DNA of 64,000 nucleotides from Macrostomum lignano. Taxonomy: Eukaryota. The stretch is from contig NIVC01002249.1 in assembly GCA_002269645.1 (NCBI GenBank), forward strand, positions 62,001 to 126,000, written 5' to 3'. Below the pieces are notes generated by a model. The model worked only from the letters and a program-made list of their open reading frames with translations, was not told the DNA's origin and did not search any database. The position numbers and the translations under genes are program-made. Below, piece by piece: positions 2,752-64,000 of the stretch. Position 1 is the stretch's first letter; the number at the start of each line of letters is the position of its first letter.

Positions 2752-3739
2752 ATGGTTTTCGGATGCACAACGTGCAAGCCCAACGAAGCTCTAATTATCA
2801 CAGGCAAGAAATTAAAACCGACGTCCTAAACTCAGAACAAATTAAAACTCGTACATTAGTTACTTATACTCGGATATATAGTTTTTATCCTCAACACTTT
2901 AACATACCAAAAGAAACAAACAGGCGAAGAAACTGTGAAACAGAGATCTAAGAAAATCTAATCAATGATTCGTGACGTGCGAGGCTTGAGTCACTACAGT
3001 CTTACAGAGATAACTACTCTGCAGAAAAAATGCAATTAATTAAATATCTATTGCTTTTAGAGTATTACTTTTTTCATCTAAAGAAAAATGTAGCTCAGAT
3101 CACGCCTATTCGAGCGCTATTTATATTGCATTCAAAGTTGACATTTCTTTGAAAAATTATATATACGAGCGTACTGTATTGATACTTTTACCATGTACAT
3201 GTGCATTATTCTATCAGATATATGCTGACGAATTTATTTCATCAACTCAATGCTTTCCTACAGGTTGCTGTTATCAATCACCGGTGTTCGTTACCAATGG
3301 ATGGAAATGTACGATTCCTGGCATACATAAAGTCCAACGGATGCCTCTGAACGTAATGAAAATCACAGTTGAATCGCCAAGAATTTATGCCAAGCAGGGT
3401 GTAACTATTTCTGTAACCGGCCTATCAGAAGTTCGAATAAATGGCTGGAATCAAGACATGCTGGCAGTGGCTTTCGACAATTTTTTAGGCAAGAAAGAAC
3501 ACGAGATTGAAGCAATCGTCAAAGAGAAATTGGAGGCCCAGCAAAGCGCTATCATTAGGCAAATGTCAATTGACGAAATCTACATGGATAGAAGAAAGTT
3601 CTGCACAGCCTTCTTCAATGCCGCCTCGGCAGATCTCGAACGAATTGGCATTTCCGTGTTGTCCTACAGGCTGGAAGAAGTCAGCGATGAGGATGGCTAC
3701 CTGAAAGCACTGGGAGAGGCGCGTCTCCGGCTCAGCTGA
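2752..3739 (+). CDS. Truncated flotillin paralog, SPFH domain only (175 aa); exons 2752-2803, 3264-3739; may be a pseudogene
   Basis: Exon 1 MVFGCTTCKPNEALIIT-G is 52 nt, the same length and phase as flotillin-1 exon 1. It ends at a GC donor (CAG|GCAAGA); the acceptor is TTTCCTACAG|. Exon 2 aligns residue-for-residue to the neighbouring flotillin-1 up to GYLKALG, then stops before the coiled-coil domain. Confidence 0.75.
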
Positions 3740-5137: not shown

Positions 5138-7980
5138 ATGGTGTTCGGTTTTCATACCTGCGGTCCGAATGAGGCACTCGTCATTTCAGGTAAAATATCA
5201 AAAATTCTGACTGAAATCATTCTACGTGTATGGAGGTTCGTTTACTAAGAGCAATATGAAATTAGACACTGGTGAAGAGTACATTACATCCCTTCCCTTC
5301 ACAACCGTCGCTAGGATGCTTTCATACTACGCCAACTTTCATCCCTGGCGGGCGCAAATTCGTGTTCCCGGTCATCCAGCAGGTGCAGAGGATCATGCTC
5401 AACACCATGACCATCACCATTGAGTCGCCCAGGATTTACACCCAGCTGGGAGTGCCCATCACTGTCACCGGGGTGGCCCAGCTGCGCATCAAAGGTCAAA
5501 ACAGAGACATGCTGGCTGCCGCTTGCGAACAGTTTCTATCAAAATCTGAGCAACAAATCCAGGAGATTGCGAAGGAGACGCTGGAAGCTCACCAGCGGGC
5601 AATCATGGGCAACATGACGGTCGAAGAGATCTATAAAGACAGAAAGAAGTTCAGCAAAGCCGTATTTGAAGTGGCCTCGTCCGACCTGGTGAACATGGGC
5701 ATCAGCGTGGTGTCCTACACCCTGAAGGTGAGTGACTGAATCAGTTTTCAATGGAGCTTTTTATCATCCGGCATGTACAGTTCATTCTTAGTCTTGAAGG
5801 GTTGACCCTCCTGAGCGGCAGATGAATGTGGCGTTGCATGCATCAGGAGGTAACGTTCTCTCGTTCTATGGAAATTGGAGCAAAAGCACCGATTCTTCCC
5901 ATCTCTTTAATGTACTTTTTCTAGCAAAATTTTGTCTGTGGTAGATATCAGGGGTTTGTGGTAGCCATGGATTTTATGGTGGGAGGGCAAAGCCAAGAAT
6001 TCTACATCACTCGATTCCTGCAGTATTTTGGGAATCGGTGTTATTAGCTCTCATTTTGGCGCAGCAGACGCTCATTTTGGCGCCGCAAAAACTCATTTTG
6101 GCGCCGCAGACACTCATTTTGGCGCCGGAGACGCTCATTTTGGCGCCGCAAAAACTCATTTTGGCGCCGCAGACACTCATTTTGGCGCCGGAGACACTCA
6201 TTTTGGCGCCGCAGACGCTCATTTTGGCGCCGCAGACACTCATTTAGGCGCCGCAGACACTCATTTTGGCGACGCGGACACTCATTTTGGCACCAAAAAC
6301 AATCATTTTGGCGCCGCAGAAGCTCATTTTGGCGCCGCAGACACTCATTTAGGCGCCGCAGACACTCATTTTGGCGACGCGGACACTCATTTTGGCACCA
6401 AAAACAATCATTTTGGCGCCGCAGACACTCATTTTGGCGCCGCAAAAACTCATTTTGGCGCCGCAGACACTCATTTTGGCGACGCGGACACTCATTTTGG
6501 CACCAAAAACAATCATTTTGGCGCCGCAGACACTCATTTTGGCGCCGCAAAAACTCATTTTGGCGCCGCAGACACTCATTTTGGCGCTGCAGACACCCAT
6601 TTTGGCGCCGCAAAAACTCATTTTGGCGCCGCAGACACTCATTTAGGCGCCGCAGACACTCATTTAGGCGCCGCAGACACTCATTTTGGCGACGCGGACA
6701 CTCATTTTGGCGCCGCAGACACTCATTTAGGCGCCGCAGACACTCATTTTGGCGACGCGGACACTCATTTTGGCACCAAAAACAATCATTTTGGTGCCGC
6801 AGACACTCATTTTGGCGCCACAGACACTCATTTTGGCGCCGCAGACACTCATTTTGGCGCCACAGACACTCATTTTGGCGTCCTAAAGCAAAGTTATTTA
6901 ATTTACATAACGAGTCAAAAGGTGGGGCGGGGGGATAAAACATTGGTATGCCCCCCCCCCCTAGCTTTTACTGGCGGACGCCCCCCCCCGGTCCCCCGGT
7001 GGCAACGCCACTGGTAGAAACCCAGTTCGCGCAATGAATTTTGCAATAATCTTCCCAATCCGTTTGGGAGAACACACTGTACTTCCTATTTGCGCGGTGG
7101 TCAGACACGCCAATCACTGTGCCATTCTGCGCCCCCCCCCTCCTACACCCTGAAGGACATCAACGATGACGAGGGCTACCTGAAGGCGCTGGGCTTGGCT
7201 CGCACAGCGCAGGTTAAGCGAGACGCCCGAATCGGCGAGGCTGAGGCTCAGAAGGAGTCCGGCATCAAGGAGGCCATCGCCGTGCAGACTCGCATGGCGT
7301 CCCGATACGAGAATGAGGTGCAAATCGCCAAGGCGCAGCGCGACTTCGAGCTCAAGAAGGCCGCCTTCGACAAGGAAGTGCAGGCCAAGAAGGCCGAGTC
7401 GGACTTGGCCTACGAGCTGCAGGCGGCCAAAACTCGCCAGCTGATCAAGGAGGAGGAGATGCAGATCAAAGTGGTGGAGCGCACCCAGCAGATCAGCGTC
7501 CAGGAGCTGGAGATTGTGCGTCGGGAGCGTCAGCTGGACGCCAGCGTCCGCAAGCCGGCGGAGGCGGAGCGCTACCGGCTGGAGCGAATCGCCGAGGCGG
7601 AGAACTCCAAGATCATCCTGGAGGCTCAGGCCGACGCCGAGACCGTCCAGCTGAAAGGCGAAGCCGAGGCCTTCGCCATCGAAGCCAGGGCGAAGGCGAC
7701 AGCCGAGCAGATGGCGAAGAAGGCGGATGCATGGAAAGAGTACGGCGAGGCCGCCCGACTCGACCTGGTGCTGAAGGCGCTACCGAAGCTCGCGGCCGAG
7801 GTGGCGCAGCCGCTGGCCAGCGCCACGAAGATCACCATGGTGAGCAGCGGCGGTCGCAACGCGGAGCTGGGAGCGGCCAAGATCACAGGGGAAGTCATGG
7901 ACATCATGGAGCGACTGCCGGCGATGCTGCAGTCCATGACTGGATCGGAAACTGGCCTGACAAAGATCACGCCTAAGTGA
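5138..7980 (+). CDS. FLOT1: Flotillin-1 (429 aa); exons 5138-5189, 5315-5727, 7156-7980
   Basis: [18 protein letters not shown]...[18 protein letters not shown]|[31 protein letters not shown]...KKAAFD...GAAKITGEV is a classic flotillin-1. GT-AG junctions in phases 1 and 0; 1290 nt in frame. Confidence 0.95.
5949..7013. mobile_element. MITE carrying an internal 21-bp minisatellite, in FLOT1 intron 2
   Basis: Ends CAGGGG...GTAGCCA and TGGCAACGCCACTG are imperfect inverted repeats. 8-bp flanks GTAGATAT / GTAGAAAC (6/8). G/C-run subtermini resemble the 2012-2193 element. Confidence 0.5.
6050..6882. repeat. 21-bp minisatellite CTCATTTTGGCGCCGCAGACA (~39 copies)
   Basis: Direct reading; variant units recur in higher-order blocks. 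Confidence 0.95.
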
Positions 7981-15357: not shown

Positions 15358-43589
<28,232 letters not shown>

Positions 43590-61995: not shown

Positions 61996-62753
61996 CAGTT
62001 TAGCCAACAGATCCCGTGTGGCCATCTGATCAGGTTTTTCGCCCGGTTTTGCTCTGGCTTGCTATGTTTTTTGCCCCATTTCCAGGCGAAGAACATAAAC
62101 CAGGCGAATTTATCCGGTTTTTCTCTGCCTTTCTAAACCAGGCGAAATTCCGGAGGAAAAACCGTACGAGTGCTCTGGTTTTTTACCCGGTCCTTCGCCA
62201 GGTTTGGAACCAGTTTAGTAACGCAGGGAAATCCGGAGTAAAAGCGGATGAAATAACATTTCCGGCTGGAATTTTGCCCGGTTCTTTCTCTGGTTCTTCG
62301 ACCGGACAAGAGCCGGATAAAAGAGCTGATGAAAGCCTTTAATTCAGGATTGGGTTGAAAATGGTATGGGAGACACAGTGTATAATTGACAATTGACATG
62401 AAGATTTTCTTGTAATTGCATGTCCTGTAATGTGCTCCTGTTTTGTTCTCTTGCAGTATTTTTTCCGCTCATCTTTATACATATCATATGAGCGTCTTTG
62501 TATGTCACATTACGAGCGTAGTTCACGTAAACTGAGAATAAAAATATATTGTCATTTTAATGCTGTCATCGCACACATTTCTGAAGGCTGCATGCTACTG
62601 TGGGATTCCAACGTTGATTTCCTCTTTTACAAAAATGTATAAGCAAAGTCCCATCCCCGAATTGGCCCGCTAGGCGTAGCGTACGTAGCAGCCTTTGTTA
62701 ATAAAGTTTCATGAATTTCCAGTGCTGGTAATTAAGAAACCTGAAATAATCAG

Positions 62754-64000
62754 CGGGCGCGACGACTGCAACAAAATATTGACGCGGCCTGCGCTGAGTT
62801 GACTGACCGACCGCGTTCCCCGGTTAGTCGCGCTGTACCTAGTACTTCGCGCAGCAGTAGCACTGTCGTCGCAGCATCGTCGCAGCTTCTCAGAGGTGCC
62901 GAGTCCGTAGACACCGGTGACAGTGAGCCCTCCGAGCATGGTGAGTAGCATCGAGGATCTGCAAAAAGCGGCCCCGATATCCGTTGATACAGAAAAACTA
63001 TCGCGCGTTTCCCACAGACTCCAGTGACGGCAGCAGTGGAGGCGACCAAAGCCGCAGTGACGCTGAGTCCGTAAACAGCGCTGGCCGCAATGGCAGCGAC
63101 GGTACAGAGACACCCGACTCTTAGCCCTCTGAGCATGGTGAGTAGCATCGAGGATCTGCAAAAAGCGGCCCCGATATCCGTTGATACAGAAAAACTATCG
63201 CGCGTTTCCCACAGACTCCAGTGACGGACGTGACGCTGAGTCACTTGACTCCAGCGACAGCGATGGCCAGGAACAGCCAGTTCTTGATCCCTGGCTACAG
63301 CTACCGTGGCACAACGGCGAACCCATCACGGGCACCATTGGTGAAGCTGTGTGTCATATCAACGACTGCGCCATTGATCTTGGAATCCCAAGTAAAAAAA
63401 TAACCAGACTTCTACGTCTTGTGCATTGTCTGGTTCCGGGAAGTCGAATTCCGCGCACTGCAAGAACTATGTGGCGGACGCTAAAGTCCGCCCAGAGTTA
63501 CATCGGCTCCGCAAAATGCGTCACTGTGTGCAACGAGTGCTACGTAAACTACCGAGGAGACTGCAGTCAAAACGGTGGACATTGCAGTGACTGCGGATCA
63601 ATGAGAGTCGCAAACTTCTGGGTTTTCAACATTAGAAAGCAGATCCGAACTCACATAGAGTCATGTGGACTGCTGCATAATTTGACTTTTCCTTCCGACT
63701 TCAATCCGCACGAAGACACCATCCATTTCTACAACAGTCACCTGTACAGACAGTTTCGGGAGTCGATAAACCTAGTTGCTAAGAGCGACCTCTCGTATAC
63801 TCTGAGCTCTGATGGGTTTCCAGCACGGTCAACCAGCAAGGTAGAGGTGTGTCCAGTCTACTTAAGCATCAACGAGGTTCACGATCATGTCAAGTTGCGC
63901 TATGACATAATCTATGGGCTCTGGGCTGCTAAGACCAAAGTGAGTTCAGCGGCTTTCCTTCCGGTGGTCGTCGACGCGCTGATTTCTTTACGCATCCGGG
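62754..64000 (+). mobile_element. CACTA/EnSpm-like transposase gene, partial; main exon from 63215 to beyond 64000
   Basis: An open frame missing from the ORF track: ...RLLRLVHCLVPGSRIPRT...CNEC...CSDCG...F.VFNIRKQI...YTLSSDGFPARSTSKVEVCPVYLSINEV...IIYGLWAAKTKVSSAAFL. The CxxC pair and the DG...S...PVYL.INE...I..GLW motif are typical of animal CACTA/EnSpm transposases. Confidence 0.75.

Follow-up and report, generated by a model that had tools for sequence, protein, structure and literature searches.

The second intron of FlotA, which encodes a flotillin-1 in the flatworm Macrostomum lignano, is in our opinion best explained as a lineage-specific, newly gained spliceosomal intron. FlotA lies on the plus strand of contig NIVC01002249.1 (assembly GCA_002269645.1), in a stretch of 64,000 nucleotides (nt; positions 62,001 to 126,000) that was analyzed as a whole and is referred to below as the window. 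Comparison of the sequence with orthologues and paralogues suggests, with a probability that we put at roughly 0.8, that the intron was gained by insertion of DNA at a 16-nt staggered break.

The repeat and the splice junctions of intron 2

The features of the locus that are relevant to this proposal are listed here in window coordinates; a vertical bar within a sequence marks an exon boundary.

5138-5189, plus strand: exon 1 of FlotA (flotillin-1), from the ATG to a phase-1 donor
5315-5727, plus strand: exon 2 of FlotA, ending GTG TCC TAC ACC CTG AAG
5713-5728, plus strand: upstream copy of the 16-nt repeat TCCTACACCCTGAAGG, located by sequence match
5728-7155, plus strand: intron 2, 1428 nt, GT..AG, phase 0 (SYTLK|DINDDE)
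5729-6049, plus strand: left unique arm of the insert, beginning TGAGTGACTGAATCAG
6050-6880, plus strand: minisatellite, 39.6 copies of the 21-nt unit CTCATTTTGGCGCCGCAGACA
6881-7140, plus strand: right unique arm of the insert, with three poly-C runs and a C9 end
7141-7156, plus strand: downstream copy of the 16-nt repeat
7156-7980, plus strand: exon 3 of FlotA including the stop codon, without any ancient 3′ intron
7173/7174, plus strand: position of an ancient phase-0 intron (DDE|GYL), uninterrupted in FlotA, placed by outgroup mapping
3662-3682, plus strand: uninterrupted homologous site in the paralogue FlotB (TCC TAC AGG CTG GAA GAA GTC)

In the 64-kilobase (kb) window, the 15-mer TCCTACACCCTGAAG has exactly two occurrences, at 5713-5727 and 7141-7155, even with up to two mismatches tolerated. 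The match gains one base rightward and none leftward, which makes it a direct repeat of 16 nt at 5713-5728 and 7141-7156. A preliminary description of this DNA had reported the repeat of exon end and intron end as exact and as present at both junctions, which holds, and as 15 base pairs (bp) long, which falls one base short. The upstream copy consists of the last 15 nt of exon 2 together with the G of the donor GT, and the downstream copy of the last 15 nt of intron 2, including the acceptor AG, together with the first base of exon 3. Any register within the repeat yields the same messenger RNA, and the sole register with GT..AG borders is 5728..7155. The donor reads AAG|GTGAGT and the acceptor CGCCCCCCCCCTCCTACACCCTGAAG|G; the acceptor region consists of a C9 run and, after it, TCCTACACCCTG, with pyrimidines at 19 of the 24 positions of 7130-7153. 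Retention of the intron leads to a stop after three codons (SYTLKVSD*).

The spliced three-exon model encodes 429 amino acids (aa) and is identical to the M. lignano proteins PAA59581.1 and PAA94048.1. The AG of the repeat, which had been proposed to be the working acceptor, is the one employed in the gene model, the translation of which, spliced through 5728..7155, equals NCBI PAA59581.1. The product is a flotillin-1 with 73% identity to that of Lingula, its top matches being from M. lignano itself, and it aligns with its orthologues without an insertion or deletion. It should be noted that the annotation of the assembly (GCA_002269645.1, Mlig_3_7) was made from RNA sequencing (RNA-seq) data and transcriptome assemblies (PMC5730564). 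The annotated junction SYTLK|DINDDE therefore represents indirect transcript evidence, and in this indirect manner the precise splicing of intron 2 is shown. A UniProt model of separate origin has the same junction, but erroneously joins the upstream paralogue to FlotA.

Repeats of this kind are not a feature of flotillin introns in general. Junction-spanning repeats measure 1-5 nt in a set of 46 introns drawn from six outgroup flotillin genes and 2-5 nt in the 7 other M. lignano flotillin introns; the earlier remark that other junctions show no such repeat thus extends to 53 introns. When the tandem arrays and a single segmental duplication of 4.8 kb are set aside, the window has only three isolated direct repeats that reach 15 nt and are spaced by at most 5 kb. 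A chance origin of the repeat is excluded. The other isolated exact direct repeats outside the arrays are 33 nt (1-33 and 884-916) and 97 nt (62934-63030 and 63131-63227) in length.

Intron position in outgroups and paralogues

Exon structures were determined by exact spliced alignment for six outgroup FLOT1 genes. The results for the position of FlotA intron 2 (TLK|DI) and for a position close to it (D[IV][KR]D[DE]x|GYL) are as follows.

Nematostella (cnidarian): TLK|DI intron absent; D[IV][KR]D[DE]x|GYL intron present, phase 0
Schistosoma (trematode): TLK|DI intron absent; D[IV][KR]D[DE]x|GYL intron present, phase 0
Ridgeia (annelid): TLK|DI intron absent; D[IV][KR]D[DE]x|GYL intron present, phase 0
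Patiria (echinoderm): TLK|DI intron absent; D[IV][KR]D[DE]x|GYL intron present, phase 0
Daphnia magna (crustacean): TLK|DI intron absent; D[IV][KR]D[DE]x|GYL intron present, phase 0
Potamilus (bivalve): TLK|DI intron absent; D[IV][KR]D[DE]x|GYL intron present, phase 0

Thus, a TLK|DI intron occurs in 0/6 outgroup genes. Conservation of the position in distant orthologues, which the preliminary description had named as an argument against a recent gain, is not observed. The ancient phase-0 intron, which lies six codons (18 nt) 3′ of the FlotA site, is found in all six outgroups and is missing from all M. lignano flotillins.

The second flotillin-1 of M. lignano, an older duplicate designated P0002, is 84% identical to FlotA and is situated in a paralogous, syntenic block with the same FN3/ANOS1 gene downstream. 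It has introns after residues 17, 136, and 271 and lacks them at 155 and 161. Both P0002 loci are continuous across the site of FlotA intron 2, where the sequence GTG TCC TAC ACG CTG AAG GAC ATC constitutes a one-copy empty site that is one synonymous base off, i.e., P0002 has the codon ACG where both FlotA repeat copies have ACC. The upstream tandem paralogue, FlotB (2752-3739), is continuous at its homologous site, SYRLEEVSDEDGY, as the preliminary description had stated for the adjacent paralogue. The insertion-with-duplication geometry of a new intron, which had been put forward on the basis of the repeat, finds support in the absence of the position from 6/6 outgroup FLOT1 genes and in the one-copy empty site in P0002. 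The simplest history that accommodates these comparisons would be loss of the ancient intron before the P0002 and FlotB duplications, followed by a single gain in the FlotA lineage.

Several further observations concern the evolution of introns in this family. The position of FlotA intron 1 is common to Ridgeia, Patiria, Daphnia, and Potamilus, and FlotA has lost every ancient intron except this first one. Intron loss mediated by reverse transcriptase preferentially deletes 3′ introns, and the loss pattern of FlotA is compatible with such a process. In P0002, the VFE|VAS intron (17816/19010 of locus L001) is, among the six outgroups, common only to Nematostella, and the INVQ|ELE intron (19414/20034 of the same locus) is placed 6 nt from the VQEQ|EIA intron, which is found in Nematostella only. 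The two may be ancient introns that were retained, or else they were gained in parallel; the repeats at their junctions, AGGT and GCAGG, are trivial. FlotB is cut down to the SPFH/Band-7 half of the protein, about 175 aa, with a stop codon at 3737-3739, and its intron 1 is at the position of FlotA intron 1, with an apparent GC donor (ACAG|GCAAG). The UniProt protein A0A1I8GKQ6 (P0001, 539 aa) wrongly joins the FlotB and FlotA products in one sequence; A0A1I8GQF9 (P0123, 1538 aa), which belongs to the P0001 cluster and is far longer than either flotillin, is probably a fused model as well.

Three copies of FlotA and the age of the proposed gain

Intron 2 is present with both repeat copies in three contigs, namely NIVC01000017.1, NIVC01002249.1, and NIVC01003285.1, the second of which carries the window's own locus (L004) and is identical to the window in the part compared. 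Because all three contigs carry both repeat copies, an artefact of polishing in a single contig is excluded; the downstream copy, about which this concern had been raised, is present in three separately assembled contigs. The length of the intron is 1575, 1428, and 883 nt in L003, L004, and L005, respectively, and the difference sits in the minisatellite, the length of which varies strongly between the copies. Since the lengths differ, the array has expanded or contracted after the three FlotA copies diverged. The unique arms of the intron are approximately 97-98% identical among the copies (divergence of ~2.5%), in contrast to the coding sequence, in which 4-5 of 1290 positions differ (0.3-0.4%), a difference in keeping with the splicing of intron 2. 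Such redundancy of the gene is consistent with the M. lignano genome having been duplicated recently (PMC5730564; PMC10468722).

The age of the intron can be bracketed by these divergences. Between FlotA and P0002, the divergence at four-fold sites is ~0.75. If the repeat is taken to have ~13 positions in the intron and 4 synonymous positions in the exon that are free to change, the probability of its remaining a perfect 16/16 match through half of this divergence is estimated to be of the order of 0.001. Because such a match is unlikely to persist over a divergence of 0.75, we infer that the gain is much younger than the duplication separating FlotA from P0002. The presence of the intron in all three copies makes it older than their ~2.5% divergence. 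The word "recent," which had been attached to the gain, is therefore justified in a relative sense, as after the FlotA/P0002 split, and has to be qualified by an origin before the three copies diverged by ~2.5%.

The DNA presumed to be inserted

The 1412 nt between the two repeat copies are made up of the left arm, the 21-nt minisatellite, and the right arm. In the preliminary description, the intron was said to have since acquired a miniature inverted-repeat transposable element (MITE) and a minisatellite. The minisatellite (6050-6880, 39.6 copies of the unit) is present. The MITE found no support: no second copy was detected, the hairpin at 6875-7015 is not above shuffled sequence (z = -1.4), and the inverted repeats are weak. 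Nor is the implied order of events demonstrable, as the minisatellite possibly came with the insert and possibly arose later.

Forty tandem arrays, mostly minisatellites with units of 12-47 nt, cover ~40% of the window. Because tandem repeats are this abundant, the minisatellite of intron 2 is real but ordinary in its surroundings. Its unit is ~70% similar to arrays with a GGCGCC core at 31.4-32.1, 33.8-35.2, and 38.6-40.0 kb, which suggests that there may be a dispersed family of related minisatellite arrays, possibly mobile. When the arms were compared with the flanks of these related minisatellites by sensitive local alignment, only a poly-C match was obtained. A (T)TGGCGCC core is common to the arrays at 6050-6880, 31452-32063, 33792-35194, 36303-37060, 38622-40016, and 41126-41884. 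The window also contains a near-identical tandem segmental duplication of ~4.83 kb (32877-37523 and 37719-42346), each copy of which has the same set of minisatellites.

The right arm includes three poly-C runs of 9-11 nt inside 190 nt (6951-6961, 6981-6989, and 7132-7140). These runs were considered as the signature of an element and rejected, since the window has twelve runs of C or G that reach 8 nt or more, without common flanks.

Proposed mechanism and alternative origins

According to the proposed mechanism, the ancient intron 18 nt downstream and almost all other ancient introns would have been lost before the gain, and the FlotA site prior to insertion would have been the uninterrupted sequence TCCTACACCCTGAAGGACATC. 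Approximately 0.6-1.4 kb of unrelated, non-coding DNA would then have entered the continuous exon at TCCTACACCCTGAAGG^ACATC. From the geometry, the two strands appear to have been cut 16 nt apart, and filling in of the overhangs would have duplicated the 16-mer on either side of the insert. The downstream copy, which is pyrimidine-rich and ends in AG, would have formed a complete acceptor together with the C9 at the end of the insert, and the insertion may have been tolerable for this reason. On the other side, a hybrid donor, AAG|GTGAGT, would have arisen from AAG|G of the target and TGAGT at the start of the insert, so that splicing of 5728-7155 would restore the reading frame exactly. The event would be placed after the split from P0002 and before the three near-identical copies diverged.

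The insert itself may have been brought in by a staggered cut made by the endonuclease of a mobile element, for which the odds appear to be slightly short of even, or, with the same weight, it may be filler DNA captured in end-joining repair; some other source is quite unlikely. Duplications of 16 nt fit the variable target duplications of the retroelement type better than those of cut-and-paste transposons.

A number of findings weigh against the insertion at a staggered break. The duplication of 16 nt exceeds both the 4-12 bp of the break-repair introns of Daphnia and the 3-9 bp of DNA-transposon introners. The position of an ancient intron is just 18 nt away, and its relocation is formally possible. 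The intron is fixed in all three M. lignano copies rather than present in some and absent from others. The support for its splicing is indirect and comes from a transcriptome-based annotation. Nor did searches of the insert point to a source. A blastn search (word size 8) of ~170 kb of M. lignano DNA, or ~0.02% of the genome, matched the arms only to the homologous introns; as this search, which included the rest of the window and the M. lignano loci L001 and L002, covered ~120 kb of non-homologous sequence, the lack of a second copy of either arm excludes only families of more than ~20,000 copies. Comparison of the left arm with the reverse complement of the right arm turned up nothing beyond noise of 10 nt, and no terminal inverted repeats. 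The insert contains no poly(A) and no coding remnant; a tRNA scan of it found nothing, and an Rfam scan only a sub-threshold match to mir-1224 (E = 0.66; 21.9 bits vs a gathering score of 105), which is noise. With poly(A), tRNA, an Rfam family, and a coding remnant all lacking, the insert does not display the usual hallmarks of a non-long-terminal-repeat (non-LTR) retroelement or a short interspersed nuclear element (SINE).

One special case of insertion at a staggered break would make the insert a member of a transposon family of M. lignano that generates introns, an "introner"-like element. An element with a TGAGT 5′ end and a C-rich 3′ tract would be spliced cleanly after any AG|G insertion with a long duplication, and the 16-nt repeat resembles a target duplication, the insert starts with exactly those bases that a consensus donor still required, and the C9 end abuts the duplicated acceptor. 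The ~70% similarity of the minisatellite unit to the GGCGCC-core arrays points in the same direction insofar as it suggests a dispersed and possibly mobile family. Nevertheless, we consider such a family unlikely. The ~120 kb searched in the window and in L001/L002 yielded no second copy of an arm, within the limit on copy number given above; the arms are unlike the flanks of the related minisatellites; terminal inverted repeats are not present; and the main text of the introner surveys consulted names neither Macrostomum nor flatworms. A mobile element of M. lignano not previously described, which would make target duplications of ~16 nt, carry TGAGT at its 5′ end to complete a donor, and be rich in C at its 3′ terminus, is an unlikely identity for the insert. 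Relocation of the ancient DDE|GYL intron by 18 nt upstream, through sliding or, for example, repair with a partial complementary DNA and, after that, an 18-nt deletion and an acceptor switch, is a possibility that the preliminary description had not considered; it would explain why a phase-0 intron is found six codons downstream in 6/6 outgroups and is missing in FlotA. We regard it as very unlikely. P0002 and FlotB have neither the ancient nor the new intron, which would demand two additional independent losses as compared with one loss and one gain; behind the donor there is no remnant of GACATCAACGATGACGAG; and at least two precise steps would be needed, with intermediates that are non-functional or altered. 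With ~11 ancestral introns per 1290 nt, a random site would be expected within 18 nt of one of them in ~30% of cases, and for this reason the proximity is not significant. Sliding in particular was rejected, given that the closest paralogues lack an intron at either site and that a 16-nt repeat of the insertion type is present.

It may also be asked whether the intron is old within Macrostomum. Gained ahead of the duplications that separated FlotA from P0002 or FlotB, it would then have disappeared from the paralogues, the repeat being coincidental or maintained by selection. Intron loss has been frequent in M. lignano flotillins, and to this extent the history is plausible; it is nonetheless highly improbable, because a perfect 16/16 match would hardly be expected over a four-fold-site divergence of 0.75 and because both repeat copies have the FlotA-specific ACC codon in place of the ACG of P0002. 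An error of assembly or polishing, or a match that arose by chance because the genome is rich in repeats, might be suspected in view of the 40% share of tandem repeats in the window and of an assembly that is PacBio-based and redundant (PMC5730564). Such an explanation deserves next to no weight, as both repeat copies are found in three contigs that differ elsewhere within intron 2, the non-tandem part of the window has only three isolated direct repeats that reach 15 nt, and the background of junction repeats is just 1-5 nt. Origin by tandem duplication was rejected, as only 16 nt are duplicated and the arms match nothing in the gene. Intronization, transfer of an intron from a paralogue, and reverse splicing were likewise rejected, since none of them predicts a duplication of 16 nt of exon end around unrelated DNA.

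Significance

Animal intron gains that are recent enough to reveal their origin are rare, and the mechanism of gain is still debated, with transposon insertion and break repair as the competing proposals. Three features stand out clearly in the FlotA case, namely the empty site with a single copy in a paralogue, the exact duplication of 16 nt, and the hybrid donor. The case illustrates that an exon end which is pyrimidine-rich and finishes in AG|G, once duplicated over such a length, provides a ready-made acceptor, such that the insert needs only to start with T(G/A)AGT. Should the insert prove to be an intron-generating mobile element of this kind, intron gain driven by transposons would be ongoing in M. 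lignano, and transgenesis would permit a direct test of the process in this animal; the species offers a redundant genome, assemblies of sister species, and working transgenesis. In the literature on intron gain that was consulted, no earlier report from a flatworm was found, and flatworms do not appear in the main text of the introner surveys. Taken alone, a single locus exemplifies a known phenomenon and does not amount to a new principle.

Comparison with known systems

Non-LTR retroelements and SINEs, which insert by a target-primed mechanism, produce variable target duplications of ~7-20 bp. The length of the FlotA duplication is within this range, and terminal inverted repeats are lacking in both. 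Unlike such insertions, the FlotA insert ends without poly(A) or a microsatellite, the plus strand having just C9 there, and it has neither a reverse-transcriptase remnant nor a head resembling tRNA, 7SL, or 5S RNA.

Introns can also form by tandem duplication of a segment containing AGGT (PMC3443670). FlotA intron 2 resembles these introns in that splice signals are derived from duplicated exon sequence, and differs from them in that only 16 nt are duplicated, the other 1412 nt being unrelated to the exon.

One of the accepted ways in which new introns arise is insertion of a transposon with duplication of its target (PMC3443670; PMC9860276). Unlike introners, the FlotA insert has no second copy in the ~170 kb searched and no terminal inverted repeats, and its 16-nt duplication is longer than the 3-9 bp reported (PMC9860276). 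As in intron creation by transposons and introners, the duplication supplies one splice site and the terminus of the insert the other, and the coding sequence remains unchanged (PMC3443670; PMC9860276; PMC12130899).

The new introns of Daphnia carry repeats of 4-12 bp at the exon end and the intron end, which have been attributed to staggered breaks (PMC4202315). FlotA intron 2 departs from the Daphnia pulex introns in its length of 1.4 kb with a minisatellite, in its flatworm host, and in its presence in all three copies instead of a presence/absence polymorphism. As in the Daphnia introns, the exon end recurs as a direct repeat where the intron finishes, with 16 nt as against 4-12 bp (PMC4202315), and the FlotA intron shares with the staggered-break introns of D. 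pulex an insert without known source, an AG|G proto-splice site, and precise splicing (Li et al. 2009; PMC4202315). In our opinion, FlotA intron 2 is a clean but not unprecedented case of intron creation by DNA insertion.

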